Assembly (NCBI GenBank): GCA_965112155.1
Contig: OZ218099.1
Direction: 5' to 3' (one strand)
Source: Podarcis liolepis
Taxonomy: Eukaryota
DNA: 64,000 nucleotides
Part shown: piece after piece, positions 516 to 54,195 of the stretch
Layout of the letters: every line of letters starts with the position of its first letter
Position numbering within the stretch: the stretch's first letter is position 1
Position numbers and translations under genes: made by a program
Notes under the pieces: generated by a model
Seen by the model: the letters and a program-made list of their open reading frames with translations, nothing else
Database searches by the model: none
Told to the model about the DNA's origin: nothing

Positions 516-995
516 TCATTCAGAGCCATGTTTTCTAGGCACAGGACAAGAAGCAGGACGGGCCCTGAGATGGAATCTTGTGTTGTACATGATGCAGCAT
601 TCCCAGGATCTCTGGGGAAAATAAACTTGTGGTGAATTCATCACACAAACTAAAGGTTGTATACATTGGCATTCATATAATTGCTCTACCTAGCCCACAC
701 TGGTCTTCGTTCTGTCTCTCTCTCTCTTCTGGAGCTTAATGGATACCTACAGCCCATGATGTGACCCTTGTCAGCTGATTTCATAATGTTCTCTTTTGAA
801 AAGTGCAGCACACATTTGCAGCTTCATGTGGTCATAAAATTCTTGTGAGCAGATAGGGATTTGGAGAGGAGGCCAACAGCAGTAAATGAAGCTTACTTAC
901 CTGCCAGTCACTTTATTCTGTTCTCCTTCAGGGTTGTCAACCCAGTATTCAGAATTATTTCCAAGGTTCAGATTAACCTCCTTGATCTAAGGAGA

Positions 996-1034
<39 letters not shown>

Positions 1035-2903
1035 ATTGAATTTATATACCACCCTATACCCGGAGGTTCCAGGGTGGTTCACAGAAAAGATAAACATAAA
1101 AACCACAATATATATATAACCACAATAAAAACAACAACCCAATAACACATCCCCCCATAAGAGAGCCACATTTTAAAAGCGCATAGGATGTCAATCAGAT
1201 CAACCAAAGGCATGGTTAAAAAGAAACATTTTTGCCTGGCACCTAAAGGTATATAATGAAGGTGCCAGGCGAACGTCCCTGGGGAGAGCATTCCACAGAT
1301 GGGGAGCCACTATAGAGAAGGCCCGTTCTCATGTTGCCACCCTCCTGACCTCTCAAGGTGGAGGCACATGAAGAAGGGCCTCAGAAGATGATCTCAGGGT
1401 CCAGGTAGTTTCATATGGGAAGAGACGGTCCTTGAGGTGTTGTGGTCCTGAGTCGTTTAAGGCTTTATAAGTCAAAACCAGCACTTTGAATTGGGCCCGG
1501 AAACTAACTGGTAGCCAGTGCAGTCAGACCAGGATCGGAGTAATATGCTCAAACCATCTTGATCTGGTGAGCAACCTAGCTGCTGAATTCTGCACTTGCT
1601 GAAGTTTCTGAACTGTCTTCGGAAAGCAGGAAAGGTCAGATCAGAGTCTGCTCTTTGCCCTCCCCCTCACTCCAGAAGAGTATAAGCAGCACTAAAAAGG
1701 AACTGCAAGTTACCCTCCAAATTAGGACCTCTGAGATAGCTCTGGACTATAGCAACTGCACCTCTAATTTAACAAACTAAATGAGATTGACTGACTGAGT
1801 GCTCACTAATGGTTCCTCGTCATCCTGGAAAAAAGGGACAAGTGGGTTGCCATGGGGTTCTGTGCCGGGTCCATGGTTTTCAACGTCTTTATAAACAACT
1901 TGGATGAAGGAATTAAGGGGATGCTCATCCAATTTGCAGGTGACACCAAACTGGGAAGGGGAGCCAATGCCACAGAAGGCAGAATCAGGATTCAAGATGG
2001 GCCCAAACTAACATAATTAAATTCAATAGGCTCAAATGTAAAGTTCTACACTTAGGCAGGAAGAATCAGCTGCACAAATATAAGATGGGGGACACCTGGC
2101 TTGCCAGTACAGTAGTACCTTGGGTTATAAAGTTAATTCGTTCCAGAGGTCCGTTCTTAACCCGAAACGATTCTTAACCTGAGGTGTGCTTTTGCTAATG
2201 GGGCCTCCCGCTGCTGCTGTGCCACCGGTGCGTGATTTCTGTTCTCATCCTGGGGCAAAGTTCTCAACCCAAGGTACTACTTCCAGGTTAGCAGAGTTTG
2301 TAACCCGAAGTGTTTGTAACCCAAAGCATTTGTAACCCGATGTACCACTGTAGTACATATGAAAAGTATCCAGAGGTCTTAGTAGACAACAGCTTAACAT
2401 GAGCCAGCAGCAGCAGCAACAACAACAAAAAACAGCTAATGCTATTCTAGGCTACATCAACAGAACTATACTGTCCAGATCAAGGGAAGTCATACTCCAA
2501 GCAGAAGTGTGGATTAGCACTCAGCTTGAATTTGTTCTTATTTGTGATATAAAGTTGCTTTATATAACTAGTTCATACTATTCTATTTTGTATAATTTTG
2601 ATATTTAGATCTCATTTGTTGTGGGTGGGTGGGTTGGGACATATTTCTTCTTTGTTGGGTTCAACATCCCACAGTGGCCAATGAGGTGCCTTCAGCACAT
2701 TTGGCAGTGTTCAGGAAACAAATGGCAGGAGAAAGTTGTGAAGCGAGAATCTGAGTAAAATTCTGGGAAGGGGAAAGGTCACACATGGTACATAAGAGGC
2801 TGCAATTGTACGCCACTACTGTACCTAGGAATAGAGTTAAGTAAAGAAACTGAGTAGCAGATGGACCTTCACAGAAAACTATGAGGATCAAGAATGGGAA
2901 GAA

Positions 2904-2949
<46 letters not shown>

Positions 2950-16870: not shown

Positions 16871-17039
16871 TCTCTCTATATTTTTGTTATTCCCGCACCC
16901 CGCGCTGAAATCACTGCAATGCCAGCTGGCCACTAGAGGGGCACAAAGCACACACCATGCCTCTCTACATTTTTTCTAACCAGCGAGAAAAGGTGCCTTG
17001 ACCACAACCTCACCAGTACTCTTCCCTTTAAACAGGGAA

Positions 17040-17493
17040 ACGAGGGGCGCGTGCGTATAACTGCCTTTTGCCATAGAGACGAGACCGGAAATCCAGCCGG
17101 GCGTTCATCGTGTGATAACCATAGAGTACATGACAGGTTGCCACGGTGATCGCTCAACCTTCCAAGCCACAACCTCTGCCGCTGAACTTCTACCAAGCCC
17201 TGTTTTCTTCCGCAGTTTGGTAAAGACACGCAGGTTGTTATTACCAGCCTTATAATACTCCCTTAGGTTCAACTCGCGCTCCGAGGAAACGCTCCGTTTT
17301 AGCTCATTCTCACGGAACGATGGTCGCAAGACCGCCTAGGCCCCCGTTTCGTTGCCATGGTGACGCTTCCGAGTCTTCGCCACTTCCGTTAAACGCATTC
17401 GTTTCTCCCCTCCCCTTTTGCAGCGGCCGTAAAGATTGCCGTACAGGCGGAAGGTGAACATCGCTGCGAAAGAGTGATAATTTCACACAGTAG
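17040..17493 (+). promoter_or_regulatory. TRAPPC5: CpG-rich TRAPPC5 promoter and non-coding first exon
   Basis: Local CpG enrichment, several ETS-type CGGAA/TTCCG sites, X-box GTTGCCATGGTGAC at 17351-17364, donor TAG|gtaaga at 17493/17494 and acceptor taatag|catcATG at 18373/18374. Confidence 0.75.
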
Positions 17494-18377: not shown

Positions 18378-18944
18378 ATGGACGCACGTTTTACCCGTGG
18401 AAAGTCTGCTATCCTTGAACGGTCACTCACCCGACCCAAGACTGATGTTAGCCTCAGTGCCTTTTCATTACTGTTTTCTGAGATTGTGCAGTACTGTCAG
18501 AACAGGGTCTACTCTGTTTCTGAGCTTCAGAACAAACTTTCTGAGCTAGGTCAGCAGGTGGGTGCTCGTATCCTGGATGTGTTGGTGATGCGGGAGAAAA
18601 ATGGTAAGAGAGAAACCAAGGTCATCAACATTCTCCTGTTCATCAAAGTTACCGTATGGAAGGCGCTCTTTGGGAAGGAGGCTGACAAGCTGGAGCAAGC
18701 CAATGACGATGACAAGACTTACTACATCATTGAGAAGGAGCCTCTTATCAATACTTACATTTCTGTTCCCAAGGAGAACAGCACACTCAACTGTGCTTCC
18801 TTCACAGCTGGCATCGTGGAGGCTATGCTCACTTGCAGCGGCTTCCCTGCCAAGGTGACAGCCCACTGGCACAAGGGAACCACCCTCATGATCAAATTTG
18901 ATGAGTCAGTAATAGCACGTGACAAAGCCCTGGATGGCCGCTGA
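18378..18944 (+). CDS. TRAPPC5: Trafficking protein particle complex subunit 5
   Basis: 188-aa single coding exon MDARFTRGKSAILERSLTRPKTDVSLSAF...FPAKVTAHWHKGTTLMIKFDESVIARDKALDGR, recognisable as vertebrate TRAPPC5. The upstream ORF extension in the track is intronic. Confidence 0.98.
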   Translation: MDARFTRGKSAILERSLTRPKTDVSLSAFSLLFSEIVQYCQNRVYSVSELQNKLSELGQQVGARILDVLVMREKNGKRETKVINILLFIKVTVWKALFGKEADKLEQANDDDKTYYIIEKEPLINTYISVPKENSTLNCASFTAGIVEAMLTCSGFPAKVTAHWHKGTTLMIKFDESVIARDKALDGR

Positions 18945-20970: not shown

Positions 20971-21784
20971 CATTTTGGATAAAAACCGTCAAATTCATGC
21001 TTCTTAAAAGTGGGAGAAGTTAAAGTTGATTCAATGATTCTATTATTCTGTACTTACAATTCCAAGAGTGGATTCTTGTATATGCTGCTTGATCACTCTC
21101 AGATGTACAGTAGTACTAGTTCCTTCCTCTCCCCATGCAGTTCATTAGAAAATTACTAAATAAGATTACAAGTCATGGAACGTAATGAATAACCACTTTT
21201 ATGCATTCTTACTAAAGCCTACATAGGATTGCAGACTTCTACCAGTGTTAACAGGGTTTTTGCTCATGGTCTTTTTGATCTACTGATAAGGGTGCATAGG
21301 ATGGCTTTTATTCACCACCAAAAGCTGGAAACTTATCTTGGAACAAATTGAGCTTTTCCTGTAATCAGATGCTGAGTAGGTAGGAGGTGCAACTCATGAT
21401 GCAAATGACTTGATGGTGATTGTAACAACTAAATTGTAAACGGCTTCCATCTAATAAGAGCCACTTCTGAGGAGGTGTTTGGCTTGTGGAAACAGCACAT
21501 CCATATAGCTTTAGGAGACCACACAACTTTTCTCCCAGCAGAGAAGTGACTGTGACAGCAGGGACACATTCTGAACCAAAGTAAGGCATGTTACATTTTA
21601 AGTGCTACGTAGTTGCAGAACTGCAATGCTTTAAAGTGTCCACAGCATCGTTGCAAGGGAGGTGCACAAGGGGGGAAAAACAGAACAACAAATTGTGCTT
21701 TCCCTTGGCTTTTACCAAGTAAACAAGAAGACTTTCCCCTACCCCAAGCAGCGAGGTGGTGCTAGGGGTGGGCATTTAGGGGCC

Positions 21785-21845
21785 TGACTCATTTGTGGCT
21801 TGCTAGATAGAAGCTGATAGTGACAGGAAGGAAGCACAAGTGGCT
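21785..21845 (+). promoter_or_regulatory. Conserved promoter module of lectin B (AP-1, RUNX-like, GATA, ETS)
   Basis: tgactca-tttgtggcttg-...gaagctgatagtgacaggaag; homologous to 34500-34550 and 54145-54195. Confidence 0.55.
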
Positions 21846-21894: not shown

Positions 21895-24800
21895 ATGGAA
21901 GACGGCTATCAGAATGAAGAATACTACAATGACAGTGTGTCAGAGAAAATATCCCACACTGAGGAAGTGCACTCGGAGTTTGAACCTACAAAAGCAGGTA
22001 ACGGGGAGAATGAGAAGAAATTCTCAAAGGGTTGCTCTGGTTCTGTAATAAGGTGTTATGTTCACACAACAGAAGCAAAATAAAGGAGGTGCCCTTACCT
22101 AGGGAAGGTGTCTTATTCCGAAGTGAAATTTGCAACTCTATGCACTATGCCATGTAGCCACAGTTCTCCAAGAGCAATAAAATTTCTTGCTGCAGAACTC
22201 GGAGGTTATTGTGGAAACATTGTAAGAAACAGTCACATTTTTCACTACAGTTTAGTTAATGTCAGCTGCTTTTTGCTAACGTTTGGCTTGCTGTATAAAC
22301 TTTCTTAAAATGTATAACTGCTAAAAATATGTATATCTTATATATTGAAACTTTTCCCCTCAATTTTTAGATATGTGTTCCAAAGGGCTCAATTTTCAAG
22401 AGTGAGGGCTGGATGGTGGGACCCCTGTCCCACAGTGGGCAAAAGTTAGAAGCAATGTCTATAGGGAGACTACTAGTCAGCAGCCATCAAATTGACTGGA
22501 AAAGGAGCAGTTTAGTATATCTGGAATCTCTTGGTACCTCCAAAAAGTAAATCAATACATTAAACTGAATTTGGGGAGAAATATTTGCCAAAGTGAAGAG
22601 GCTGACTTGAAACATTGGTCAGGACTAGTGATGGGGGTGGGGAAAGAAACTTGATTAAAGCAACCATATTACTAGTTGATTCACGTTCTCCAAGGCTTAT
22701 GTCTCACTATCCCCGAAAGACATTTCACTCAAACCAGGAGGCTCCAGAAGGTAACCCTAGTATTGCCTATACTAAAACGCTCTTAATAAAATGCAATACA
22801 TAAATGTTATAAATGTAGGAAAAAAGGTAAAGGTAAAGGGACCCCTGACCATTAGGTCCAGTCTCAGTCAGTTTTATTGCACATAGCCAAAGGCTGCCAC
22901 AATGTACACAGAATTATTTGACAATTAAAAGAAATTATACTGAATTGGTAAAAAAAGACTTAAAACATTTGTATTATTAAAACATTACATACTCTAAACA
23001 AAGCTATAAAAGTACCCCAATGTACAAGTAAAAACATTAAACAATAAAATTCATAAGCTAAAATCATCACATGGTCACTAATGTTAAAAACAGTATCAAT
23101 ACAGTGTGCAATTTATACTCAGAGTTTGGTGACAAAGATAGAGCATAGCCTGAGGTAGATAGATGGGATCAAATATATTCATCTCCTTTACAGTTAATGG
23201 CTATCTTGGCTATATAATTTGCTCTAATTTTCCTAGCAGCAGTTGCAAAAAGTGCTACCCGCCAGGTCACATACTTATCTGTGTCTGCAAGGAGATATAA
23301 CATCATATATCAAGGGGGTTCTGGTCAGGGGACCCTGTCATTATAGGTACCCAAAATCTTTTTCTTGCATCATGTGGCCAGCATGACTAAGCTGCTTCTG
23401 GCGAACCAGAGCAGCGCACGGAAACGCCGTTTACCTTCCTGCCGGAGCGGTACCTATTTATCTACTTGCACTTTGATGTGCTTATGAACTGCTAGGTTGG
23501 CAGGAGCTGGGACCGAGCAACGGGAGCTCACCCCATCGCGGGGATTTGAACCGCCAACCTTCTGATCAGCAAGTCCTAGGCTCTGTGGTTTAACCCACAG
23601 AAGCCACCAAAAGGGCTATATTCTCATTGGTTTGTCTTACCTGTGCACTGTAGAAAGAGAGGGCTGGATGTGCACCCATTCAGGGTGCAGCAAGACCCTT
23701 TCATCCAGAAAGTCACAAAGCAGACAGTCTCTTAAAAGTGCTCTTTCCTCTCTGTAGACTCAATGATTTTGGACCAGGGATATGAGAATGCTGAGCCAGA
23801 ATATGAGTACATCGGGTTTTCTGGCATACAGATGAGAAGGCTACCAGACAACAGAGAGAAAGCAGAGCCAGGTGAAAGGTTCAATGAACTTGACAAATGA
23901 TATTACAAACTTTCCTAATGTGCTTGGAAAACTCTGGGAATATGCTTGTGCAATATATGAAACTGTCAGGGACTGGGCAGAGGAGGAATGGTGGAGACTG
24001 CCTCCCTAGCCTGACTCTTCCAGAGAAGAGGAGGACTGTTTAGAATTACAACAGGGATTTGAGGGAGGTCATAGCTCAGAGGCAGATGAGGGGGAAAGTT
24101 GAGAAATAATGGGAGAGGAGGAGGAGGAGGAAGTACCAAGAGGGTGACAGCAGATGGACTCTTTAGAAAGCATTCCAGACACACACACCCAGAACCCGTC
24201 GAGCCTTGAAAGTAGGAGAGCCAGAGCTCAAAGGCACTTGTCAGCACCTGTAGAGGTGATGAGGATGATGAATAAGGAAGTGGGAGAGATGGGGTGTGTG
24301 TGTGGAGATTCACTTGGGATAACGCCATTATCTAAGAGGCTGGGTTCTAAAGCCTCTCTCTGTAAATACTGAATAAAAAGCGGATGGCAAGAACATTCCT
24401 TGCCTTCTTTATATGTTCTTGGGTAAACCGGCCATGGGAGTTGCTGGCAGCAGCCTGACAGAATCAGACTTTTTCAATTCAAACTGTAATCCCTTAAAAT
24501 GGGTGGTGAACCTAAAGCCTGGGGGTCAAATGTGGCCCGGCCCTCAGGACACTCACGGAGCCATGCTTCCTCCCTCCCCTGCTTTTTAGCATCCTTGATT
24601 GCTTTTCCTGGCTGGAATTTGTCCTTGAACTGTGCTAATGCCTCTTGCTTGCCTGCAAGATTTCTAGTTCCTGAAATTTTCTGACGCTCCTACAGCTTCT
24701 AGGTGGCTTACTCTTCTTTATTGGCAGCACTGTATACATTTGAGGATGACAAGCGGGGACCTTTCGTCAGGAAACCCGTCAGCATCTTCTCACTTCTGCT

Positions 24801-32700: not shown

Positions 32701-33403
32701 CATCGGCTGGACCATTTCCCACAGCCTGGCTCCGACTAAGGACAACTCTGCTAAATAGCTCCACTCCAGCCACGTTTGGCTGGTCAACTTCGCACATGGC
32801 AGCTTAAGCTCAAAGCCATGTTCCTGGGACTGAGCCATTTCCTCCCTCGGGGTAAGCGTACTCACGACTGGCATCAGCTTCCTCCGGCTCCCGGCAGATT
32901 GGCCTCTCCTCCCAGTGAGCTCCTCTCAGCCTCAGAAAGCTCTAGCTGGCCCCAGCGTCTTCTCAGCTGGCTTTCCCCCACACGTGGGACGTTCCTGCAA
33001 CAGCTTCAAAGCGTCGGCCAAGAGGTCCAAGAGGGCCAAACATGGAGTCCGGCACTCTTCCGTTGCACAGCTTGCAAACTGTCTGTGCCGATCCAAACGT
33101 CCTTCCTCCGCCTTGGCCGGTTAGCAGAGCGATCACAGCGGTTAGAAGCAATTGCAGTGTGTGGGTAATAATTCAGAACAAACACAAGGCGTTCCTTATC
33201 TTCTTAGCCTTTAATCATGTAGTATAACAGCATAAATCAGCCCAGCGAAACCTCGCACATTCTTCCTCTCGCATAGCTTACGAGACACAGACAGACTGAA
33301 ACACTCAGAGTAAACCACTCCCGTAAAAGTCTGTGACCACGCCTCAGGAATGTGAGACGTCACTCAGAACTCTTTAACCCTGTGAGTTCTGAAACCCTTA
33401 ACA
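29774..33403 (-). mobile_element. Ty1/Copia LTR retrotransposon, non-autonomous (no RT/RNase H)
   Basis: LTR cores 29781-30166 and 33018-33403 (386 bp, 4 substitutions by eye), TG..CA ends, PPT (gagaggggg) next to the 3' LTR, flanking duplication GAATCTA. Confidence 0.93.
30127..32874 (-). CDS. Copia Gag-protease-integrase polyprotein (915 aa), truncated at the start of RT
   Basis: Protease WVVDSGASHH, GAG-pre-integrase WHKRMSH..CRAC, rve core ELVHTDLAGP..SDRGSQF..GVAE, SH3-like IFCGYD, linker RRSTRTTKGIPPERF, then AMGGELNS running into the PPT/LTR. Confidence 0.88.
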   Translation of the reverse strand: MPVVSTLTPREEMAQSQEHGFELKLPCAKLTSQTWLEWSYLAELSLVGARLWEMVQPMSKAAGTVAGQHEAEKRVLAFLAENVAADLKPIVLGARKPEAAWLALQEACEAGGGSKGREMAASEQERQDGADHLRESRCTAGKSWEAPEGGKGTIATAAVAASFAESKSCVVAALCLREEPGKRQAAGSPLPIRGGAGKRPGSPVRSGGTVSSKSSEKPLFPKAAKSFLRRKPKPGKPDRARGFKASHLLQREITAAELSGNAEISPVFRATEGVAVTEAAKDRGSGTFVAMATLKNNSSKDRMLQWVVDSGASHHLIGTPPAGGLRNCRAVSAGTTVTFANGAQKPVSNVANIYVSFLQAELECYIVPEIHCCLLSVPALVKQGYKVCFENDACSIFRGGKQLVNIECKNNLFVLETPLEGGGNAGKAQAQCASVPSHDSCVHIWHKRMSHACLEDVQRLPGCTKGCEITPCGKSLECRACSKVQRCSFPGVKRVTTKPFELVHTDLAGPMKCESLGGVRYVLTMTDDFSQNGWSFSLRTQGEAAQLIQDWVAEVELRFSTKVQGFRSDRGSQFTGSALKEFFKQKGIRHQVTDAKSPQERGVAEHRSETLAEAVRVLLCDSGLPQSFWSEAWKFASFVFNRSYNHAVGDTPFFLLHKQKPQVHFFRVFGSRASVPIPTAQRKEGGPRYQEMIFCGYDPATNGWKFAYPEGDQTKLLVSKHAEFCEQGGWSKPRDGPDVLSECLSDSEGEEGETEAEPVAEDQVAEEGQAQGWVSPQVKREPKSEPSSPVSQVQKARRRSKSEGESSELSGDTLADPSGSGGAPEVVLRRSTRTTKGIPPERFQVTSAWVGFAQCDSGSVEGIQQLPGIDARGRHKAMGGELNSKRSVDMCPQFPSGCKTRGGVKGFRTHRVKEF

Positions 33404-34499
33404 GAATCTAACTGAGTTTTAATGTGCTTTGTAGCAATCGGCCTATCTCTGCGAGGAGAGAGGAAGAATCTCTTCCCCAAACTTCTATTTCCAACATCAC
33501 ATCTTAGTATGCCATTTAAATATAAGCAGATGGTGCCATGCACACATCTAAAAGGTAGGGATTCCAATAGTCAAGAGGTCACCACAGAGAAGGCTCTGTT
33601 GCATACCACTGTCCCAGAGAGCACCCCAAAATTACAAACTTACCCTTTCTAGAGGAGTGCCCATCCCAATACACAAGGAGGCTCACTTCCTAGACTCAAC
33701 AACTTGGCACACACATTTATCTTCCTCTTCCAACAAGCTTTATCCAAGTTTTCATCTGTATTAAAACTATTTAAACTACTTGTATGTATGCAATTGTTTT
33801 TCATTGTTTTATAGATGAAGCTGTTTTTTCCTGTTTCCTGTTTTGTGGTTGCAATTGTTTTATAACTGCATGTATTAATTTTGAAAACCACCCTGACACC
33901 TAGCAGAAGAGAGATCTGATAAATAAAATGGACCTCTGTCTTGTCTGGATTTGATTTCAGTTTATAGGACCACCCACCCCACCCCCCACCCCACCCCACA
34001 CCCAGCCCATTGTTGAACAAATGGGTGACAAAATGGAGCCCTGTGGGACACTGTGGATAATTTCTCAATGTAAATCAATAAGATAAAAAAACAAATACTT
34101 AAAAATAACAACAGCAAGGAAAATAATACAGATGAAATTACTTTTCCAGAAAAATGCTGTGCACAGATGGAGTCTTGCTAGTGTTAGGGCAAATGAAAAT
34201 TTTGGCAGATACCTGGGTGATCAACCTTCTTTCAGACACCTCCAGACATTTCTTATGATAATTTGAACCTTTGTTTTGCGGTCCCTTTCTTTTCTCAAAT
34301 AACATGAAGCCTGATCACTTGCTCTTTCATTAAGAGCCCACTCATAGTTGTCTGAACCTTTTGTAACGAATCAGCTTCAGTCTCTTTCACAGTTCAGCCA
34401 TAATTAGCTAGGACCATCCCATCCTGCTTTGCTACATTCAGCCATGACAGTTGCACTCCCCTTCCTGAGCATTAGGAGTGGGGCAAGCGCCTGACATTT

Positions 34500-34550
34500 C
34501 TGTGGTTTGTTAGACAGAAAGGAAGCTGATAGTGATAGACAGCAAGCACA
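34500..34550 (+). promoter_or_regulatory. Conserved RUNX-ETS-GATA promoter module of lectin C
   Basis: TGTGGTTtgttagacagaaAGGAAGcTGATAGtgatag, ~70-110 bp upstream of the ATG. Confidence 0.6.
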
Positions 34551-34612
34551 AGCATCCGGTTACTGAGCTTAGCTGCTCTGAGAGGCATTCGAGGAGAAGA
34601 ATCAAACCCATC

Positions 34613-37037
34613 ATGGATGACGGCTATCAGAATGAAGACTATTGGAATGAAGATTACCAGAATGACATTCTTTCAGACAAATTTTCTCAGAATGCTGAAG
34701 TTTCCTCAGAGTCAGAACCTGGAAGTGCAGGTAAATCAGGGTGGCAGTGGAAGGAAGCAGGAAGGGAGGAGAACGGGAAATTCTCAAAAGGCTGTTCTAG
34801 TTCTGCTGCTGTTGTGTCCACATCACATATAAAACACACAATTCCCTATGTGAGTGATCTAACAAGGTTATCATTCCTAACTGTAATTCTCCTCTATACT
34901 CATGACTCCTCTATACTCTAGTAATTCTCCTCTATACTCTATACTCATTAGGACTAGATCATGCTGCCACAGTTATCCAGTCTTGGGAGGCTGTTTAGTA
35001 AGATTGCAATAAACAGTCACAGTTGCTGCAGCAGTTGCAGCATGGTCACATTAACATGTTAGCCTCTTACTTGCTATCAGCACAAGCATTCTTAATATTT
35101 ACATTTGCTAATAAGCTTCTTTTGCCCCAGTTTTGGCTCTTTGATATATTATTCCACAATGAGTGACACAGCTGGACGTGCCCACTTCCAGTGGGTAGAA
35201 AGACCATGAAATCTGGAAAGTCACAACGGAGAGCCAAGTAGGTAATCTCTTTAAAAAAACAACACCTTTTCTGTCTCTAGAATCAGTGGTTTTGGACCAG
35301 CAGGGATATGAGAATGCTGCACAGGAATATGAGTACATCGGGTTTTCTGGCGTCCGGCTGAGAAGGCTACCAGAGAAGGGAGAGGAAAGAGAACCAGGTG
35401 AAAAGAGTTAACATACTTCCACAAATGGCACAAATAAATGTTTTTAGTCTCTCTATTGTACTGCAGTCTGAAGAGGAGCACAAATAATATCCCCCTTCCT
35501 CATTAGACTTTAAAAAGCCTTTGTTGCCCAATTCAGACACCAGTTACACTTTCCATCTACTTCCCTGTCCCGCTTTGGGCTCTGATGTATTGGAGGACCA
35601 CATGAACATTGTTGTTGTTCTCATTCCTTCCGTTTCCAAAATTCAGAGGAGTCTCATGTAGCTAAAATGGCACCGTCCACACACAAGAGGGAGGTATCAG
35701 AAGCTTTGGGGAAACCTCAAGGTTTTCCAGAAGGACAAAAAATATTTTGAAACCCAGAATGAGCATGCTCAGTAGGCATGGAACGCTTGCTGTACTTTGG
35801 CAGGGGGGAAGAGGGAAACCTGGATGGAAGGGAGACTAGCCAATCCCTCTTCCCTGTGAATCCTGGGAATTGTAGCTCTCTGAAGAGAACCCTTAACAAA
35901 TCAAAGAGGCCATGATTCTCTGAGGGAAGCCTTCTTTATTCTCAATAGTCCTGCTCCTGAAATCCTGTGGTCCTCCTTGAGCTTCCAGGTTTATTCTTCT
36001 TTATTTGCAGCACTGTTTACATCTGAGGATGGCAAGTGGGGACCCTTTGGCAGGAAACCCTTCATGATCTTCTCAGTTCTGTTGCTCTGCTCCTTAATCA
36101 TAACAACAGCTACTCTCATAATGGCATGTCTTAGATGTAAGTTCAGATCTGAAGAAGGTAAAATCTTCTGGATATTACTTCTGTGTAGTTCCACCTGCCC
36201 CACCCCACCCCCAGAAGTACATAGTGCTGAAGGAGGAAGTAGAGAGAGCGACACTCTGTCCCATTTCTTCTTTCAGCTCTATGTATTCAGCTCTATGTAT
36301 TCCTCTTTCAGTTTATATGTATTGTTGCACACCACTCCAATCTCCGAGAAGTGCCTGGATTCCAGGGGTTTCAGATGTTTCCTTCTGGAAATGAGGCACA
36401 GCAGAGACTGTGGTGTCTTTATGATGTATTTACCCATATATGCAACCTGAGCCTATGATGGAGGGGTTCACAGTATCAACACCCCCAAAAGTTCTTGCTT
36501 CTCCCATAGTTGCAGCCTTGGATTGAAGCAGAAATCAACTATGGCCCACTCTCTGCCTTTCCAGCCTGCAGCTTTTTCTCCAGCTTCTAGTTCACATCGC
36601 AGCAAACTCTGCCCTCAAACTCAGGCTTTGCCCTTCTATCTATCTGAGAGCTGAAGGAGGAGCCCTCCCATTTGCCATTGGACACAGAGCCCTCTTTCCT
36701 TTATTCTCTTAATGGCCCATCACCTTTCTTTTGTTATCTGAATGGCCCCTCACCCAGGCAGTTAGCCTGACTTGATTAAATTCTAACATTTGCTGGATCC
36801 AGTGAATGAAGAGGTCTGGCAACCACAAACTAATAACATTGCTTTTCAAGGCTCAAATCAGCAGCTGAAAAGAAAGAAAACTGACAAGAGAGAATATGAG
36901 GGAAAGGAGGAGCAGTTTGAGAGACTAGGGGGAGGAAAATGGAGTCCCTGTGAGGAGGCAGGGTGAGAACAAAGACAGAGATCAAGAGGGACACACAGAG
37001 AGGAGGGGATGGAATGCTGGAGCAAGAGAGATGAGAA

Positions 37038-37104
<67 letters not shown>

Positions 37105-38675
37105 ACTGGTAAAAGAGATCCTCTTGGAATTACATGTTTTTTTCACATATCTCCCCAGCACACACAGCCAAAGTCAAATCACAGATCACATCTTTCTCCG
37201 TTAACTGAACCCAGATTTTTATGGTTCGCCCTTAGGTGATGATATTTCACACACACACCATCTGGATAAGGCAAAGGGACTGGTTTTGAAATGTGTGTTT
37301 ATTGGCAATTATGGTAGTGTATGACTCCAGGCACAATAACATCCTTTGACCAGCAAAACATCTAAGATATATTAATGCTGGGTAGCATTAATCAACATTT
37401 CCATATATTGCAGGCTTTCCAAAGTGTGCAGATGACTGGTATAAGTTTCAGGAAAAATGCTACTACTATTCCACAGAAAAAATGCAACAGAATACAGCTA
37501 GAAGTTTCTGCCAAGCCCTAGGTGCAGATCTAATAGTGATTGACAGTGAAAATGAACAGGTAATTCTATCTAAGGAATAAATAAAATATAATTGAGTGTG
37601 TTACTTTCACTAATATATTCATTTCTGTGAACACTTGCCTAATATGTGCAATTTTGCAAATATTATATGGCTAGAGAACTGCAAATTCATGTTATTTTCA
37701 TTTTCTATGAGGACTTTCTGAAAGATGAACTGCCGATAAGCAAGAACACTTGGATTGGACTGACTTACATAGAGGCTGAAAGAAAGTGGATGTGGCAAGA
37801 CTTCAAAAATCATTCCTACACGTGAGTAGCATTATTGAGTTGAAAATTCTCTACCATATCATAGCACTGATTTGCAATGACTCCTTGTCCACCCCTGTTT
37901 ACTATGTGCATTAGCTACAGTTAGATCTGCTCCCTAGTGCTTATAGTGCATTAGCAACGTCTCTCCCCTCCAAACTTGACAGCTAAAGCTGAACCATTTT
38001 CCTCCTCTGAGTACCTCTCCTCTTAGAATATGGTAGCAGATCTTCCCAAACTCTCGAAAGGTCAGATTCATGTACTTTTCCATACAGCAGTCAGAAAACA
38101 CAGGTTGTAAACCTGGGCTTTGTTTCAGTGGTGAAAGTTTCTAAATTATTGGTATAGGAACACAAGAATGGCTTGTAGGATCAATCAGCTCAGACCTCTT
38201 TACACACTGAGTTTCTCAGATAAACTGGAGGGGAACAGCAATGGGCTTGATTCCCTCCTTACCAAAGTGAGGGAGAATGACCTAGCTAAGCCTGACAGGG
38301 CAGCTTTCTCTCTGTCTGTGGAATTAACTCATTCATGCATTAATTAGACTTAAGCATGTTGGTTATATGAGACTAGTTATCCCACACAAAAAAGTTGAGG
38401 CCAGCATCTGCTTACCACCCCTGCTCCCAAGTTCATGATCCTGCCCCATATACTGGATTCCCCTGATAGCATGCAATTCAGACAAATTTGTGTTTCTCAT
38501 TTTCAGAAACTGGGATGGAAGGACAGAACCAATCAGTTCCCGATGCTGTGTGATTTTGGACCCCAAGTATGAACTAAAATGGAAGAACACAGAGTGCCTA
38601 AGACGCTTTGGCTTCATTTGTGAAAAGAGCAGGCACATTGCCTGTGCCCTGCAGTCCCCATTCTTACCTCATTGA
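34613..38675 (+). CDS. Lectin gene C: type II transmembrane C-type lectin-like receptor, 261 aa, 6 coding exons
   Basis: Exons 34613-34730 (MDDGYQNEDYWNEDYQND..), 35281-35397 (QGYENAAQEYEYIGF), 36011-36136 (TM), 37414-37559 (CADDWYKFQEKCYYYS..), 37712-37821 (TWIGLT..WMWQD; weak GAG acceptor), 38507-38675 (RCCVILD..KWKNTEC..FICEK..ACALQSPFLPH*); total 786 nt, open frame. Confidence 0.88.
36350..36830 (-). mobile_element. Solo-LTR-like repeat (same family as 14110-14570)
   Basis: Sequence similarity to 14110-14570 seen by eye. Confidence 0.5.
37040..37102. repeat. Compound (CT)n(CA)n microsatellite
   Basis: Direct reading. Confidence 0.95.
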
Positions 38676-43971: not shown

Positions 43972-44101
43972 TGGTACGCTCATAGTGATCTTTTAATAAC
44001 TAGTAACAATGTGAAAGATCCATGCTGCTCATTGTCCATAAGAGTGAGCCTTGTGTTTGGTAACTGTGATCTTCTTCTTTCTAAGGTGCTGGTACAACAC
44101 A

Positions 44102-45043
44102 ATGAAGAAGAATCACACACAAGTGACAGAATTTATCCTGCTTGGGTTCTCTGTGCCTCCAGAGGTACAGATTGCATTTTTCATCCTGTTCCTGCTCATG
44201 TACCTCCTAACCCTGATAGGAAATCTGCTGATAATGTCCGTTGTTTATTCTGAACGGAGCCTCCATTTTCCCATGTACATCTTCCTCTTTGCTTTGTCTT
44301 GCTCTGAAACCTGTTACAGTTTAGTCATTGTCCCCAAAATGCTGGTTGATTTGCTAGCAAAAGTCAGAACAATCTCTTTTGCAGGGTGCGCTGCACAAAT
44401 GTTTCTTTTCCTTGGACTGGGTGCAACAAACTGTCTCATTCTTACATGTATGGGCTATGATCGGTACCTAGCAATATGCCACCCCTTGCGCTATCCTGTC
44501 CTTATGAATATGCGGGTAATTCTTTGGTTCATAGTCATTTCCTGGATTGCGGGATTCCTCATATCTCTAAGTGAGGCTGCTCAGATCCTTAGGTTGCCCT
44601 TTTGTGGCCCCAATGCCATCCGGCACTTCTTTTGTCACATGAGGGCAGTGGTTAGGTTAGCCTGCACTGCCGACAATACAACTGAAGTGTCTATCTCTAC
44701 TATTGGCATGCTGGGTTTGGCTGGCAGCCTTCTGTTCATCATGTTGACTTACATCTTAATTCTCTCCACCATCCTGCGCATCCCCTCCACGGAGGGCCGC
44801 CAGAAAGCTTTCTCCACCTGTGCCGCCCACCTCATTGTGGTAAGTGTGCACTATACATTTGCCTCCATCATTTATTTCAAATCGAGCTCAGCTGACACAT
44901 TAGAGGATGACACACTGATTTCCATACCCTACACCATAATTACTCCATTTCTCAGTCCCATTATCTTTACTTTGAGAAACAAAGAGATCAAGGTTGCGGT
45001 AAGGAAGGTAATCACTAAAAAGGTACTTTCCCAAAAGATATGA
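44102..45043 (+). CDS. Olfactory receptor (class II, OR10-like), intact, 313 aa
   Basis: N-glycosylation site NHT, FILLGFS, LHFPMYIFL, MGYDRYLAICHPLRY, HFFCH, KAFSTCAAHL, SPIIFTLRNKEIK; 7 hydrophobic segments; acceptor ctaag| just upstream of the ATG. Confidence 0.96.
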   Translation: MKKNHTQVTEFILLGFSVPPEVQIAFFILFLLMYLLTLIGNLLIMSVVYSERSLHFPMYIFLFALSCSETCYSLVIVPKMLVDLLAKVRTISFAGCAAQMFLFLGLGATNCLILTCMGYDRYLAICHPLRYPVLMNMRVILWFIVISWIAGFLISLSEAAQILRLPFCGPNAIRHFFCHMRAVVRLACTADNTTEVSISTIGMLGLAGSLLFIMLTYILILSTILRIPSTEGRQKAFSTCAAHLIVVSVHYTFASIIYFKSSSADTLEDDTLISIPYTIITPFLSPIIFTLRNKEIKVAVRKVITKKVLSQKI

Positions 45044-45982: not shown

Positions 45983-48900
45983 TCAGTGAGAACTATGAAA
46001 AGCCTGCCAGACACAGGCAAGCTGCATGCTCTTTTCACAAATAAACAGACTGGTGGAGTTGCACGAGCCATTACGCCACTTATGGTTCTCTCCTTTATTC
46101 ATGACAACACAGTCTTTTGGATTACGGCCAGCTTTGCTAGTCGGTTCAGAAGGCCCCCATCGTCTGAAAAAGAAAAAGAAAAGCAAACATTTGCCTGGTG
46201 ATGAACTTGCCAAACTGTCAGTTCTCACTCGCCTCCTTCTTTCTAGTCACGTGTGGTTACTCTTCACATGCTCATCTCCTTCCCCACCCACCGAGAAATG
46301 CCCTTTGCCCCTTCGGTGCCATTTCTGATGCTTTTCTTTCAGGTGCTGATTTTGATTTAGTATTTGCATGCTGCTCTCCCAACAACAAAGCTGAACAACG
46401 AAGTACACGGGACCGTATTTCCATCCATAGAACCAGAGCTAAAAAACATAGTGGCATATCAGTCAAGTAGAAAACAAACCGTTCAATGAAGAGTTAATGC
46501 AGTTCAATACAAACTCATTAATAATAATACTAATAATAATTTACCAGAAATGTTTGCTGAGATAGGAAAGGGGCTGTTTCCTTACCCAGTGCAACAGCAC
46601 AATCCAGGCAGCAGCTTTTTTTTATAATTTCTGCCGCAAACTAAGGCAAGCCAGCTGGTCTCACTCAGCTCTGGACAGAGCACAAGCAATCCCTTGCAAA
46701 CTTTGCTGCCACTACTATAACCAGTGACATTACCGAAGTTGGAGTCCAAGCTCACCTCCATACCCCAACAATGTTGTAGCATGTGGCTGGGAGACCAGGG
46801 GAGCTGAGCTTTTTGGGGTCAAGGAGGATGAGTCCTCACTTTCTGAAGTCTTGTGATGAGATACTGAATTCCATAACAAGGCATCGTGTGACACGGTTCC
46901 GGGGGTTGGAGGGGGAGGCGAGAAACAGAGGGAGTGATGTGAATTCTGACTGAATGCTTTCTTTTGGCCACTTACTAAAAACCCGGATGTGCTGCTACCC
47001 CAACACAGATAGAAACAGTAATGCACATGGCAGTTTTCAGCTCAAAACTGCCCATTTAACATGGTTAGCCAGCTGTGCTTTTGAAACATCATGAGAGATC
47101 TGAGATAAATCGACTGAAAAGCAACACTCACGTGTAAGAGGCAGTTGTGCCATCCACCCACTTCCATGCCATTTCTGTTGTCATGTATCTTAAGCCAATC
47201 CACTGTGAGGTCTTCTTTTTCATGTTATAAACGAGGAAATCCTAGAAAAAGATAGAGAATTGATGGATTTTCTCCTCACCCGGTCCTCAGTGTTCCCAGC
47301 AGTGGGACTGGGGACCGCACCCCACGTTTATTTGTACAAATGTGAGTAAATCATATGCACAAATATGAGTAAATCATGTTCACATAGCTAAGAAGTAGAG
47401 CACACACTTAGCACGCTGAGGGGTGGGCAAACCTCTGCCTTCTTGTTTTTCTTGTCCTTTCAGGCCTCACATGGACAACTTAAAACGTAGCTAGGTTGTT
47501 CTTTTTCGCGACTGAAATTGAAGATGGTTTGGATGGGGTGTGTGTGTGTGGATACATTGACACGTGGTGCTTCATAAGAAACAACAAGATAGATATGAAT
47601 TTTTTCTAACATCACGTGCTCACTGCTTCCCAAACTGAATACAAAGCAAACAGGAATGTGCTCACACAGCCAGAGATTTCTTGTCTCCAAGCCCCAACTT
47701 TGGGACAGGGAATTTTAACTCTTGCGAAACGGTTACCGTATTTTTCCATCTATAAAACGCCCCCATGTATAATACTTCCCACCCCCATTTGGGGGGACTC
47801 AGTTTTAAGAAAATGAGGGGAGATGGCCCAAAGTTATTGAGCCTCTCACCCCACACAGCTGCGGGCAGGCAACACTGCCTAGATCATTTCCCGCACGCAG
47901 TGGCATCAGGGGAAGTTGCTCTCCTGCCAAAGAGCTGGCTGGCGGTGCACAGCTTCTCCCCCCCCCAACACAGCTGTTTGCAGGAACCCCCCCCCCCAGA
48001 TTGCTCCCCACTCGCTCCAGGATCGGGGGAAGCCACACTCCAGCCAGCAATGTGCCACTCCCCCCCCCCGCCCAACATGCCACTATCCATGTATTGGACA
48101 ATCCCAGGTTTTTTACATGATTTTAGAGTCAAAAAACCTTTTCCAATACATGGAAAAAACTGAATCTTCTTGCAACAATTTAGAACATAGAAAGCTGACA
48201 TTAGAAGAACATCTTTATTTACTTCTTTTATATATTTATTGAATCCACATCCCGCCTTCCTCCTGAAGCAGCCCAGGGTGGCAAACACAACAACATTTCA
48301 AAAACTAAACAGGCAAACAAAGCATTCTAAAAATAATTACAATTGAAAACATCTAAAAGCAGTTACAGGTAGAAACATTGCTAAAGACCTCATTCCCTCC
48401 AGTGCTCCCAGGGTTGCCTTTTACGTTATGTCTTTTTATGACTGTGGATTTAAGCCGACAGCTTTAAATGTTCTGTTGTGCTACCATTTACTGGTTGGTT
48501 TTGTGATCATTTTTCTTTTGCCACTGGAATAAACAAGAAACAAAGGCCTTTGGGGGGCAGGTGGAAACAAGCAGTACAATTTTGGAGGTCCTGCTTTAGC
48601 TTTTTGCCGCTTCGCAGGTAAGATTCACCTTCTGTTGTGTGGGCAGGACGGTCCCTCCCCTTACCTGGCCAATACCCTGGCAATGCCTCCCCAGGCGGCA
48701 CTGGGCAATTGGCTGAGGTAGGCGGAGACCTCCAGGTATCCAGCCTGGGGAGGATGAAGCCAGCCCGAACTACCAGGAGTCAGACTGGGATCCAGGGGGC
48801 TGTGCGCAACCATGCAAAAGGCACCCCCATTTAATGTGGGGAGTGGTCATTAGGAAGTATGCAAGGAGCAGCTTACTTGTACTGCAGACTCTCCAGAAGC

Positions 48901-51900
48901 ACATCTGGGAGAGACCTCAGCTTGAGAGACCTCAAAGAGCCTCTGCCAGGAGGACCAAAGACACCTCCATAGGAGGCATTTTTGTTTCGTTTGTTTACAT
49001 TTGATATAAAAGAACCAAAGTACAAGTTTGGCCCATGTGAAGAGTGTCTTAGGGGTGTGACACTGCTTTCTTATTGAACTTTCTTTACTGCAATAAACTT
49101 TTGTTCGATCATAATGAAAAACAAATTGTTATAGATTTGTGGAGGGGGACCTCTTCTAAACCCTAGAAATTAATAAATGGTAGGAATTTGATTATTTAGA
49201 GTACTGAAGGGAAGATTGCAAGCCAGTGGGGGAAAACAGGCTAAGCTTCCTTTCCAAGGCAGCTCTTCACCTGGGCATTAAACATGACAAAAGTTGTTGA
49301 TGGCTCAAAACGGATTCTTGGGCTTGGGCACACAGAGGTTGCCATGGTGATGGGGTGTGTGCTTAAGGTGTCAGGAAAGGAGAGTCTTCAGAGCAAGGTG
49401 AGCTGGGAAGGAGAAGGGGAAGAAAAAAGAGTGAGTTCCATCTTGGGCAGGCTGGCTGAAGACTGGCTGGGAGAGATGTCTTTGACTCCTGTGTTGCACT
49501 GGCTCTGGGAAACAAGTCCTGCTTGAGATCACCATGTTGTAAGATTGGGACTCCCAACATGCAGACTGAAGGTGTAAGTAGGTGAATAAACTATATTTCT
49601 TAAAGTCTCTGCCATTTCTCAATTCTCCAAAGGAACACAGACCCTGGGTGGGTGCCAGGAACTCCTTGGAATCTTGTTACCACTCGGGGGTCGCACCCAA
49701 CTTTTTTAGCAATATAAAAGAGACAATTTCATTTGAGAAGAAAGTAAAATTAATTGGAATAGCTGTTATTCGGGGTTCCCCAAGCTGATCTTTAACTACA
49801 CCTTTCCATGAGGTTATACCTAGCAGGTGTTTTTGTGTGCTGCCCTCCTTATTGTTCTGATTGGGAAGATTCAAGGTAGGTTGCAATCATAACATTCCTG
49901 GTAGCAGAAGAGGAGCTTCTTGTGCAAGATGTCCATCACAGGGAAAACTCACCTGTTCCTTTTCACTATCTATAATCACCAGATCTGCACTCAGGTCTTG
50001 GCAGGTGCTCCTGGCCTTTTCCCAAAAGACTTGTTTTCTGGAGTAGTAGTAGCATTTGTCCTGGAATTCATGCCATTTGAATGCACATATTGGAAAGCCT
50101 GCAATACACAGATTTGAGAAATAATGCAGCACAGAATGAATGCCTCTTTGTTTACAGGATGTTTTTGTGACTGGCACCACATACCACTACAGACGGACAC
50201 TTAGCAAATGCACACATGTGGCCTGTAGGTCTTTTCTGTTTATCCATATTGTAGTGCACAATGCCTCCACCAGTGTCTTCCCCATTGGTAGTGTGGCCTC
50301 TAGACTATTACTGGACTGGCAAAAAAAACTCTTTAGCATTCTGACTGATGCTAATTGATTCATACAGTAGCTTGAGCATTACATAACATTAGAACATAAG
50401 AAGAGCCTGCTGGACCAATGGCCCATCTAGTCCAGTGCTCTATTCTCACAGTGGCCAACCAGATGTCTTTAGAAAACCCACAAACAGGATTGGAGCACAA
50501 GAGTAGCCTCCCTGCTGTCCTGCGGTTTTGAGCAACTGTAGAGGCAGATAAGAGCCATCATGCTAAGCAGCCATTGATAGCTTTGTCCTCCATGAATTTG
50601 TCCAATCCTCTTTTAAAGCCATCCAAGTTGGGGGCCACCATTGCCTCCACTGGGCGCGAATGCCATGGTTAAACTATGTGCTACATGAAGTACTTTTTTC
50701 TTCTCTCTGTCCTGAAACCTCCACGATTCCACTTCATTGGATATCCGGGAGTTCTAGGGTTATAAGAAAGGGAGAACAATTTTTCTCTACACACTTCGTC
50801 CATGCCATGCATAATACTATGAATGTCTATCATGTGACCACTCGCTTGCCTTTTCTCTAAGCTAAAAAGTCCCAAGCGCTGCAGCCTTTCCGCAGAGGGG
50901 AGTCACTCCATCCTCTTGATCATTTTGGTTGCCCTTTTCTGAACTTTTTCCAACTCTAAAGCATCGGAATCCAGGCTCAACATATGCACGTGTGCTTGCC
51001 GGTCCTTGCCAGTTTTTGACATAGCAGGATGGGAGCTTGTTTCCTCCATGGCTCTTCTTCAAGAACAGAACTGGTGAGCAGAGCTCAGTCCTCTTGGAAA
51101 GGCACCATCAAGTTTAAGAGATCACTGTAACCAACCACAGGCCTTCAGTATTAGGGCTCCTATACAGTACAGTGAATGCCTGGGTACAATTTCAGCAGCT
51201 AAGTCACGCCTTGCCACAAGTCTGCAGAGGTCTGAAAATCTATGAAACCCTAAGGGACAGGAGTTTTAATATTGAAAGGAAGGCCAGACCATGTCACGTT
51301 CTTTTCTGCAACTTCTGTAAGACTTAGTCAGTGAACCCACAAACATAAACCCAGCGGATCCAGCCCTGGAGCAGTCATTGCCCATGGCCTGCTATGGAGG
51401 ATGCAGACTCAAGCTAGCAATTAGCTTCAAACCTGGACTTACATCTGAGAAATGCAATCACAAAGGCAGCATTTGCCATTATCAGGGAAAAGATTGTCAG
51501 AAGGTAGATTACGAAAAAGGTTATCCTGTGGCGGTCCCATTTGCCAAAACTGGATGCAAACAGAGCTAGAAAGAAATGAGAAGACATTCACAAAAGTTAC
51601 TGCAGGAACAGCTTGTTTCAATTGCCAGGCTACTAGGCAAGGGAAAGGCATCTGTACAGTATCTGGGAGATTATCAATAGGATTATCAATAGGAACACAT
51701 GCAGCTCCTTTCCAATCATTCCCATATGATCAGTTTCTAAAATAATGTTGGTTGGCTTATTGTGCAAATGTATTTAACAGAGGCGTGTGTTGTTTTTTTA
51801 AAAAAGAAAGGCTTGGAAGCTGAAGCTAACCCACAAACCAACATCTATCTCATTCACATATCAACAGCATTGCTTTAAAAGTTAAAATAAAATATGTCCC

Positions 51901-52892: not shown

Positions 52893-52947
<55 letters not shown>

Positions 52948-54088
52948 AGACACAACCTTCAAATTAGGCAGGTAACTGAGGAGGACAGAGAGTGGATTTT
53001 TGTGGGATAGGAATATGTGCTCAGTTATACCACCTTGAAAACAAATACCTGGGCTGAGCATGTACTCATCCTGTTTCCAGATCATCTGGAATTCAATTGA
53101 ATTCCCACCTGCAAAATAGTCTGGAAGTGGTCTAAGTATATGTCTGTCCCCAACATAGGTTTTACTCCTGTCTTCAATTGGTATGTCTTAGGGCTGAAAT
53201 CTGCCCTCTCCTGTTTAGGAACACAAGAACAAGGAGGGAGGGAATTGCCTTTATCAATAAGTTAATACTCACCACATTTCTGAGGAGCATAAGTCAACTT
53301 AAAAACTGTTGTTTTCAGTATTGCACACTCCATTAGACATGTTTACATTTTTTTTTAACATGTAAGAGGCAGATCATCTTAATATAATTATATAATCTTA
53401 ATATATAATTATAATCTATATTTCTCACCTTGCTCTATTTCCAGTTCTTTCTCTGGTAGTTTTATCATCAGCATGTCCTTGTCTACAATGTAGTCATAGC
53501 CCTGGTTGTTATTGTCATATACAATGGTCGCTCTCCCTCCGTCGCACCTCACATATTTTATCGAGTTTTTATTTTTAGTTAATGCACCTATGGAGGCATT
53601 CTTCCAAACACAGACCCATTTTTCTTGAGAGATGTTACTAGATCTCCCTCCCTTTAATTTTGTACAAGCTGTTCTTGAGCTGGCTAGCACCTTGGTATCA
53701 AGATCTGTTCCTCCATGCAGCCTTGGACAGAGCTACTTGGCGAGGCCACCTAAAGGTGAGGCAGAGCCCAGAAGGAAGGAAGCAGTAGCCACCCTTACAT
53801 TACTCAACTTGACAATTGTACATGCTGGGAACTGTCAGGGGACCTACACAAATATTTTGAGGCTAAGGTGTTGCTAAAGCTTATGCTTTGGGAATGTAGA
53901 GTCTGTTCCTTTGAGCACATGATCAGCTCAGGAGAAATGAGGAAGCCACGGAACTGAAATTAGGGGAAAGGAAGCCAATGTCAATGTTTACCTGTTCCTC
54001 CATGTTTTGAGGACATTTCCGAAGCATGGGACAGTTTCTCTGAAACAATTTCATTCTGATACTCTTCATTCTCATAGCCGTCATCCAT
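45983..54088 (-). CDS. Lectin gene D: type II transmembrane C-type lectin-like receptor, ~271 aa, 6 coding exons
   Basis: Exons 54088-53992 (MDDGYENEEYQNEIVSEK..), 53587-53429 (..TIVYDNNNQGYDYIV..; acceptor less certain), 51565-51443 (TM), 50098-49953 (CAFKWHEFQDKCYYYS..WEKARSTC), 47241-47132 (QWIGLRY..WKWVDGT), 46163-45983 (WGPSEPT..DCVVM..KWRNGSC..FICEK..ACVWQAFHSSH*). Confidence 0.87.
50390..50965 (-). mobile_element. CR1 LINE 3' end
   Basis: LGLFSLEKR..G.MI...FRTERRKKYF on the minus strand; aacataagaagagcc tail. Confidence 0.8.
52900..52945. repeat. (CA)n microsatellite
   Basis: Direct reading. Confidence 0.95.
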
Positions 54089-54144
54089 GGTGGCCTCAAA
54101 TCTTCTTCTGTAATGGTTTCCAAAGTAATCGGCAACCGGATACT

Positions 54145-54195
54145 TCTGCTTTCTTTCTATCACTATCAGCTTCCTCTATGTAATAAACCACAGGA
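54145..54195 (-). promoter_or_regulatory. Conserved RUNX-ETS-GATA promoter module of lectin D
   Basis: Minus strand reads ccTGTGGTTtattacatagAGGAAGcTGATAGtgatagaaag. Confidence 0.6.

Follow-up and report, generated by a model that had tools for sequence, protein, structure and literature searches.

A candidate squamate family of neck-less lectin-like receptors with YxN-bearing tails beside TRAPPC5

The stretch of the lizard Podarcis liolepis analysed here, 64,000 nucleotides (nt) of contig OZ218099.1 in assembly GCA_965112155.1 (hereafter the window, which contains zero N), raises the question of what kind of receptor surrounds TRAPPC5 in squamates and through which part of its tail such a receptor might signal. 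TRAPPC5 is flanked there by four six-exon genes, A, B, C and D, which encode neck-less type II receptors with a C-type-lectin-like domain (CTLD) and a cytoplasmic tail containing one or more Tyr-x-Asn (YxN) motifs. We give a probability of roughly 0.6 to the reading that they belong to a squamate family of neck-less, CD23-related type II lectin-like receptors in which phosphorylated YxN (pYxN) would signal through adaptors of the Grb2 family. To our knowledge, the innate immune receptors of reptiles are almost unstudied, and a literature search returned no work on these squamate receptors and none on an MCEMP1 with a lectin domain.

Four genes around TRAPPC5 and their squamate relatives

Exon borders were set by reading the sequence and verified exon by exon, with split codons translated singly. 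The window genes were searched as single exons, and database orthologues (P0001, P0005, P0017, P0018 and others) served as full-length proxies. The genes are arranged as follows.

TRAPPC5, 18378-18944, plus strand: single coding exon, 188 amino acids (aa); Pfam TRAPP, 4e-44.
Gene A, 17074 or 13244 to 686, minus strand: first exon 17074-17014 or 13244-13226, then 6423-6313, 4535-4401, 3148-3018, 986-901 and, tentatively, 821-686; exons of 19 or 61/111/135/131/86/136 nt; about 205 or 219 aa.
Gene B, 21895-28728, plus strand: exons 21895-21997, 23758-23871, 24728-24853, 26479-26624, 27084-27193 and 28539-28728 (stop); 103/114/126/146/110/190 nt; 262 aa.
Gene C, 34613-38675, plus strand: exons 34613-34730, 35281-35397, 36011-36136, 37414-37559, 37712-37821 and 38507-38675 (stop); 118/117/126/146/110/169 nt; 261 aa.
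Gene D, 54088-45983, minus strand: exons 54088-53992, 53530-53429, 51565-51443, 50098-49953, 47241-47132 and 46163-45983 (stop); 97/102/123/146/110/181 nt; 252 aa.

When the four regions were compared by tblastx, six collinear exon matches were obtained for B, C and D, and for A only the transmembrane exon and the first CTLD exon were recovered. Junctions are AG...GT throughout, there are no in-frame stops, and exon 3 of each gene encodes one hydrophobic, uncharged transmembrane segment. The four paralogues of one exon plan that the original prediction had drawn from the same letters are therefore real in structure, including the single transmembrane segment free of mid-membrane charge and the two CTLD exons that in B, C and D measure exactly 146 and 110 nt; the phases it gave, 1/1/1/0/2, hold in all four genes. 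It was equally right about TRAPPC5, whose match to the zebrafish protein of PDB 2J3W (chain B) covers the whole of that protein at 361 bits, and which scores 264 bits with its Drosophila namesake. Per exon, the lectin genes of the window are 82-100% identical to models from Podarcis raffonei, P. muralis, Zootoca vivipara and Lacerta agilis (B, 82-95% to the 262-aa P. muralis protein P0005; C, 89-100% for most exons to P0001 and P0003), and A is 74-93% identical to the L. agilis models P0018 and P0028. Gene C has an alternative exon 3 donor at 36157 that would give 268 aa and is the donor of the P. raffonei and Zootoca models (P0001, P0002); model P0003 uses the donor at 36136.

Relatives were sought in word-indexed searches, for which an orthologue and a family profile were the queries, and by running a profile of the four transmembrane exons against 1.84 billion representatives, which is how the L. 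agilis models of gene A were reached. All family members are squamate, and as these searches reach fairly close relatives only, this means that the family was not detected elsewhere; at E <= 0.001 the transmembrane-exon profile matched squamate proteins only. We regarded three other hits, all metagenomic, as unrelated: the low-scoring proteins P0021 and P0025 and a weak CTLD, P0016. The relatives come from the following groups.

Lacertidae: Podarcis, Zootoca, Lacerta
Cordylidae: Hemicordylus
Iguania: Anolis, Sceloporus
Amphisbaenia: Rhineura
Gekkota: Paroedura
Scincidae: Tiliqua
Varanus
Snakes: Crotalus, Naja

A maximum-likelihood tree of 14 proteins, in which orthologues stand in for the window's own D and A, splits the family into an A-type clade and a multi-YxN clade with support of 100/99. 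The A-type is found in snakes, Varanus and a skink, the multi-YxN type in a gecko, iguanians, a cordylid and an amphisbaenian, and lacertids have both. Aligned to each other with hhalign, the two profiles match in a single collinear block 194 columns long (E 3.5e-40), which extends from the motif in exon 2 (GFENSDRDYENV against GYENAEPEYEYI) across the transmembrane segment and into the CTLD, which argues that the two clades are old paralogues with a common tail, transmembrane and lectin architecture. The tree gives no firm order inside the multi-YxN clade for B, C, D, the cordylid pair, the iguanians and the gecko: the free tree lacks a lacertid B+C+D group, and forcing one costs 5.4 log-likelihood units and is not rejected by the approximately unbiased (AU) test (p = 0.10), so that B, C and D may or may not be a lacertid-only triplication. 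The squamate expansion that had been predicted thus stands insofar as there are four paralogues whose detected relatives are squamate only, and falls insofar as it was pictured as one local expansion, for the tree has two old clades.

The automatic names of these proteins disagree (CD69-, CLEC2B/2D/2G-, CLEC4D/4G-, ASGR2-, perlucin-, lectoxin-Phi1-, collectin-12- and PLA2R-like, or 'uncharacterized'), and none of the relatives is named MCEMP1. As the names between them invoke at least eight mammalian lectins that are unrelated, users of the annotation would be misled; the expectation that the family would prove uninformatively named and uncharacterised was a sound one.

Tyrosine motifs of the tails

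Exons 1 and 2 are predicted to encode a disordered, acidic, tyrosine-rich cytoplasmic tail and exon 3 one uncharged transmembrane helix with a juxtamembrane cysteine. The tyrosine motifs of the multi-YxN tails in the window are as follows.

Gene B tail: YQN, YYN, YEN and YEYI
Gene C tail: YQN, YWN, YQN, YEN and YEYI
Gene D tail: YEN, YQN, YDN and YDYI

The YxN count is three in B, four in C, three in D and one (YENV) in A, the same tally as before (one in A, three or four in B-D). Shuffling the residues of the tail exons gave a mean of 0.03-0.38 YxN, with P = 0.0016 for B, <0.0001 for C, 0.0024 for D and 0.029 for A. The motif is kept in all 20 of the 20 family proteins, at least once per tail and one to five times. 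A-type tails contain just one such motif, Y-E/Q-N-V, whose tyrosine is usually the only one in the tail, and in Anolis sagrei P0006 three tandem 8-residue repeats (N-D-Q-N-K-D-Y-Q) in residues 4-40 produce five YxN, which suggests that the tail evolves through duplication of YxN units. The two old subfamilies would thus differ in their tails, one YxN in the A-type and one to five, usually with a YxxI and a C-terminal extension, in the multi-YxN type to which B, C and D belong. None of the four genes has an immunoreceptor tyrosine-based inhibition motif (ITIM), in line with what had been claimed, and a full activation motif (ITAM) is likewise absent from the four. No Pfam family matched the tails, and an Atlas search with them gave a sub-threshold match (0.83, KLRF1 cluster) and otherwise none; we do not use it as evidence.

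The single YENI of MCEMP1 is phosphorylated and binds Grb2-SOS (PMC10090139), and prolectin has YXNX motifs, a target of the Src homology 2 (SH2) domain of Grb2, is tyrosine-phosphorylated and co-purifies with Grb2 (PMC2709368), so that the premise of pYxN as the Grb2 ligand in these two tails is well founded. By analogy with both, docking of Grb2 on the squamate tails is plausible. Ligand-driven clustering would lead Src-family kinases to phosphorylate the tail tyrosines, and the resulting pYxN would dock the SH2 domains of Grb2, Grap and Gads and feed SOS/Ras-MAPK and Gab/PI3K, as has been shown for the single YENI of mammalian MCEMP1 and suggested for prolectin; the neighbouring YxxI may add Syk/SHP or endocytic input. 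We infer that the wiring would be of the Grb2 kind rather than of the ITAM kind, and that the receptors would be expressed in immune cells, phosphorylated on their tails and bound there by Grb2.

The YxxI just mentioned, which had no place in the original prediction, is itself conserved, as EYEYI in B and C and as GYDYI in D, and lies beside a YEN motif. It could serve Syk, SHP or AP-2. It is accordingly worth asking whether YxxI is the functional motif, either as a Syk site resembling the hemITAM of CLEC-2 and Dectin-1 or as a YxxPhi endocytosis signal, with YxN secondary. Its persistence in B, C, D, Anolis and Hemicordylus would fit, as would the acidic residues just upstream, which are hemITAM-like, and the N-terminal M-D-D-G-Y, which resembles the D-E-D-G-Y core of hemITAM receptors; moreover, the single motif of the A-type and of MCEMP1 is YxN and YxxV/I at once. 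The gecko member and a Rhineura fragment, however, have YxN without YxxI, the feature that varies and expands is the copy number of YxN, as in the tandem repeats of Anolis sagrei, and it is to Grb2-SOS that the MCEMP1 motif binds. On balance we consider it unlikely that YxxI is the motif that matters most.

Several further observations weigh against signalling through pYxN in a CD23-related family. Neither the Zootoca nor the L. agilis model of D has the third YxN (YDN) of the window gene, and in Anolis the YEN of exon 2 is replaced by WNN or WKN. Since the tails are acidic, with a high content of N, E and Y, some YxN could be compositional, although the shuffle test argues otherwise. The case for Grb2 stands on a three-residue motif, and the tyrosine motif with the main function could instead be the conserved EYEYI. 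Finally, the end of gene A in this genome lacks the last canonical (ICEK) cysteine, and lacertid A-type proteins score 16 bits against Lectin_C, below its cut-off of 22.6. In Varanus, Tiliqua and Naja the A-type proteins reach 52-60 bits, so that degeneration of this lectin domain is a feature of lacertids and not of the A-type as such.

The lectin-like domain, gene A and the rest of the locus

Exons 4-6 are predicted to form a CD23-like CTLD placed directly after the membrane. The single CTLD exons of the window match Lectin_C weakly (16-25 bits), and full-length orthologues reach 63-77 bits, or 55-77 bits when the orthologues of B and C are taken with the other multi-YxN members (PF00059); with scores above the cut-off and a fold that includes WIGL and the cysteines, the multi-YxN members belong to the CTLD superfamily. 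B, C and D have WIGL and six cysteines; A has lost WIGL. Neck and coiled-coil stalk are both missing: exon 3 ends at the transmembrane segment, and exon 4 opens with the first CTLD cysteine motif, F-P-x-C. In the AlphaFold model of the C orthologue a disordered tail is followed by a transmembrane helix (93-127) that runs straight into the CTLD, whose predicted local distance difference test values lie mostly in the range 72-87 and drop to 60 in a single block of 10 residues.

The calcium- and sugar-binding residues of group II lectins (EPN or QPD, with WND) are not found in B, C or D, where the EPN/WND positions read DNI/WNN (B), EPI/WKN (C) and EPT/WRN (D), which agrees with the non-canonical CTLD of the original prediction; only the gecko member keeps GEPNN, with WNA. 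The lacertid genes have lost these residues, so a calcium-bound sugar is probably not what their products recognise. Multi-YxN proteins also have a C-terminal extension, C-x-L/W-Q-S-P-x-x-P-H/Q (28690-28725 in B, 38637-38672 in C, 46021-45986 in D), that is kept from gecko to lacertids and is missing from the A-type; its extra cysteine may form an interchain disulfide.

Score rankings against the PDB, together with Foldseek, stand in here for a tree with CD209, CLEC4G, FCER2, CLEC17A and the lectins of the natural killer (NK) complex. Foldseek places CD23 lectin domains first (E 2e-11, TM-score 0.76, root-mean-square deviation 2.3 A, about 30% identity), with Mincle, SRCL, ASGR and MGL next, and CD23 as the closest predicted lectin domain fits the mammalian MCEMP1-TRAPPC5-FCER2 neighbourhood. 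A neighbourhood of Retn, Mcemp1, Trappc5, Fcer2 and Clec4g is common to mammals and Sauria (PMC4467842), as the original prediction had presupposed for mammals, and B, C and D lie in what corresponds to the TRAPPC5-FCER2-CLEC4G-CD209 neighbourhood of group II lectins. Could B, C and D nevertheless be NK-complex lectins of group V, similar to CD69, CLEC2 or KLR, that stand beside TRAPPC5 by chance and are no kin of FCER2 and CD209? Some of the automatic names (CD69-, CLEC2B-, CLEC2D- and CLEC2G-like) say as much, the C orthologue scores almost the same by sequence with CD69 (62 bits) as with CD23 (64 bits), the family resembles group V in having neither a calcium site nor a neck, and the A-type Varanus protein has NKR-P1B as its marginally best single-domain match (53 bits). 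Against this stand the adjacency to TRAPPC5, the group II and SRCL folds that lead the Foldseek ranking, and the gecko member, the least derived of the family, which retains GEPNN, has its best scores, from 74 to 95 bits, with group II and SRCL domains (SRCL 95, Mincle 83, DC-SIGNR 82, CD23 74) and has no full-domain NK-type lectin among its top 60 matches, NKG2-D matching in part only (82.5 bits, query residues 118-202). The NK complex is a separate locus with no known linkage to TRAPPC5, and none of the four genes lies in it. Chance placement of group V genes thus seems to us distinctly improbable, and a link of the family to the FCER2/CD209 group is moderately supported.

Gene A departs most from what had been proposed. 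Its coding start, thought to lie near 6900, is at 13244 or 17074 according to the L. agilis models; YENV is in exon 6423-6313, the transmembrane segment in exon 4535-4401, and the lectin exons, 3148-3018 and 986-901, are corrected to 131 and 86 nt. The second of these, exon 5, was not found with B, C or D queries and was found only with the L. agilis model, to which it is 93% identical; WIGL has turned into YWVDN in it. The last exon proposed earlier, 611-516 on the minus strand, is out of phase with this ortholog-supported exon 5, and we rejected it as the terminal exon despite its likeness to exon 6 of C, C-C...C spacing included (1/500 shuffles); it may be a relic duplicate of a terminal CTLD exon. 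Tentatively, we take the phase-compatible 821-686 as the last exon; its likeness to the L. agilis C-terminus is weak (19/500 shuffles), and no clear match for that C-terminus was found. An (ATC)n microsatellite (987-1030, minus strand) ends right at the acceptor of exon 5, and a (GA)n microsatellite (700-730, minus strand) sits where exon 6 departs from the L. agilis C-terminus. At the other end of the gene, the distal first exon (17014-17074, minus strand) is head to head with TRAPPC5 (18378, plus strand), 1.3 kb from its start codon, in a GC-richer stretch; A and TRAPPC5 may share a bidirectional promoter.

In gene D, the acceptor of exon 2 (53530) has a poor pyrimidine tract, yet the same junction is used in P0017 and P0027 (Zootoca and L. 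agilis), and exon 6 shares 38% identity with the end of the gecko protein P0020 (C-terminus, E 5e-9). The database models of D from these two species are truncated or read through an intron; P0027, the L. agilis model, reads through the exon 4 donor. Within D intron 4 (48876-48950, minus strand), a 25-residue stretch is 88% identical to the C-terminus of P0027 and may be an alternative terminal exon that yields a truncated isoform.

Upstream of B, C and D, conserved blocks precede the start codon.

Block of B, 21780-21840, plus strand: TGTGGC followed by AGAAGCTGATAGTGACAG, 86 nt before the ATG
Block of C, 34487-34552, plus strand: TGTGGT followed by GGAAGCTGATAGTGATAG, 92 nt before the ATG
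Block of D, 54140-54205, minus strand: TGTGGT followed by GGAAGCTGATAGTGATAG, 86 nt before the ATG

Within the window the 18-mer GGAAGCTGATAGTGAYAG occurs at 21809-21826, 34521-34538 and 54157-54174 only (expected 0.01), with the TGTGGT/TGTGGC core about 20 nt further upstream, and it is absent upstream of A. The blocks contain RUNX-, ETS- and GATA-like cores (TGTGGT, GGAAG, TGATAG).

We hold it to be very improbable that some of the four genes, or all of them, are silent or decaying copies and the database models prediction artefacts: the sub-cut-off CTLD and uncertain last exon of lacertid A, the poor acceptor of D and its faulty Zootoca and L. agilis models would fit, but 24 of 24 coding exons are open with AG/GT borders, motifs, cysteines and C-terminal extension are conserved from gecko through iguanians to lacertids, and so is the block upstream of B, C and D.

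Gene B starts 3 kb downstream of TRAPPC5 and is followed by C and D, and the cluster also takes in two elements of other kinds.

Olfactory receptor gene, 44051-45043, plus strand: intact, 330 aa, between C and D, within the cluster; Pfam 7tm_4, 1e-46.
Young long terminal repeat (LTR) retroelement, 29777-33313, between B and C: 300-nt direct repeats 29777-30076 and 33014-33313, 99% identical.

The four genes are thus sited beside an olfactory receptor gene as well as TRAPPC5, which adds to the earlier picture of the cluster. The LTR element has an open reading frame of 915 aa (30127-32874, minus strand) with gag-pre-integrase, integrase core and SH3-like domains, in which no reverse transcriptase domain was detected. 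Beyond D, positions 55000-59700 (minus strand) are AT-rich (GC about 0.35), with several long minus-strand open reading frames, and look like a fragmented long interspersed nuclear element, with pieces that by appearance are ORF1-like (58869-59678) and endonuclease- and reverse transcriptase-like (58578-56411).

Comparison with known systems

With CD23/FCER2 and the CD209-CLEC4 receptors of group II the squamate genes have in common the type II orientation, the long-form CTLD fold, a CTLD spread over three exons and the site next to TRAPPC5. They differ in lacking a coiled-coil neck, in the loss of the EPN/WND site in lacertids, in their multi-YxN tails and in the additional C-x-L-Q-S-P extension; the tails of CD23 and DC-SIGN have endocytic motifs. 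The hemITAM receptors (CLEC-2, Dectin-1, CLEC9A, NKp80) are likewise small type II CTLD proteins without a calcium site, and their signalling depends on one tyrosine motif, acidic and close to the N-terminus, with the core D-E-D-G-Y. In contrast, the N-terminal motifs here have E or D, not L, at +3 and N at +2, and the genes lie outside the NK complex.

Prolectin (CLEC17A) has a canonical carbohydrate-recognition domain, a neck and a different locus; its likeness to the squamate proteins lies in being a type II lectin receptor with a YXNX tail. It differs from them in binding mannose- and fucose-terminated glycans and in having a much longer tail with SH3-binding motifs (PMC2709368).

MCEMP1 is a type II single-pass protein, is encoded beside TRAPPC5 and has one cytoplasmic Y-E-N-I/V, the motif that the A-type keeps, and gene A has the same combination of type II topology, one YENV and a position next to TRAPPC5. 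The MCEMP1 protein itself we take to have no lectin domain. It is tempting to speculate, on the strength of this resemblance, that the A-type might be the squamate counterpart of MCEMP1, that mammalian MCEMP1 would then be a lectin receptor minus its lectin domain, that the same loss may be under way independently in lacertid A, and that B, C and D might be lectin-bearing sisters in which the Grb2 motif has multiplied. We put this forward tentatively, as a possibility that falls short of being the likelier outcome. The study of MCEMP1 makes no mention of a C-type lectin (PMC10090139), and we found no paper on the ancestry of MCEMP1; if the idea is correct, it would supply an origin for this mammalian mast-cell and macrophage adaptor and a natural series of intact, degenerate and absent lectin domains in which to study the passage from receptor to adaptor. 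As read here, the squamate family would join a CD23-like fold without a sugar site to repeated docking motifs of the Grb2 type, a wiring for which the literature consulted offers as examples prolectin, among lectin receptors, and, without the lectin domain, MCEMP1.

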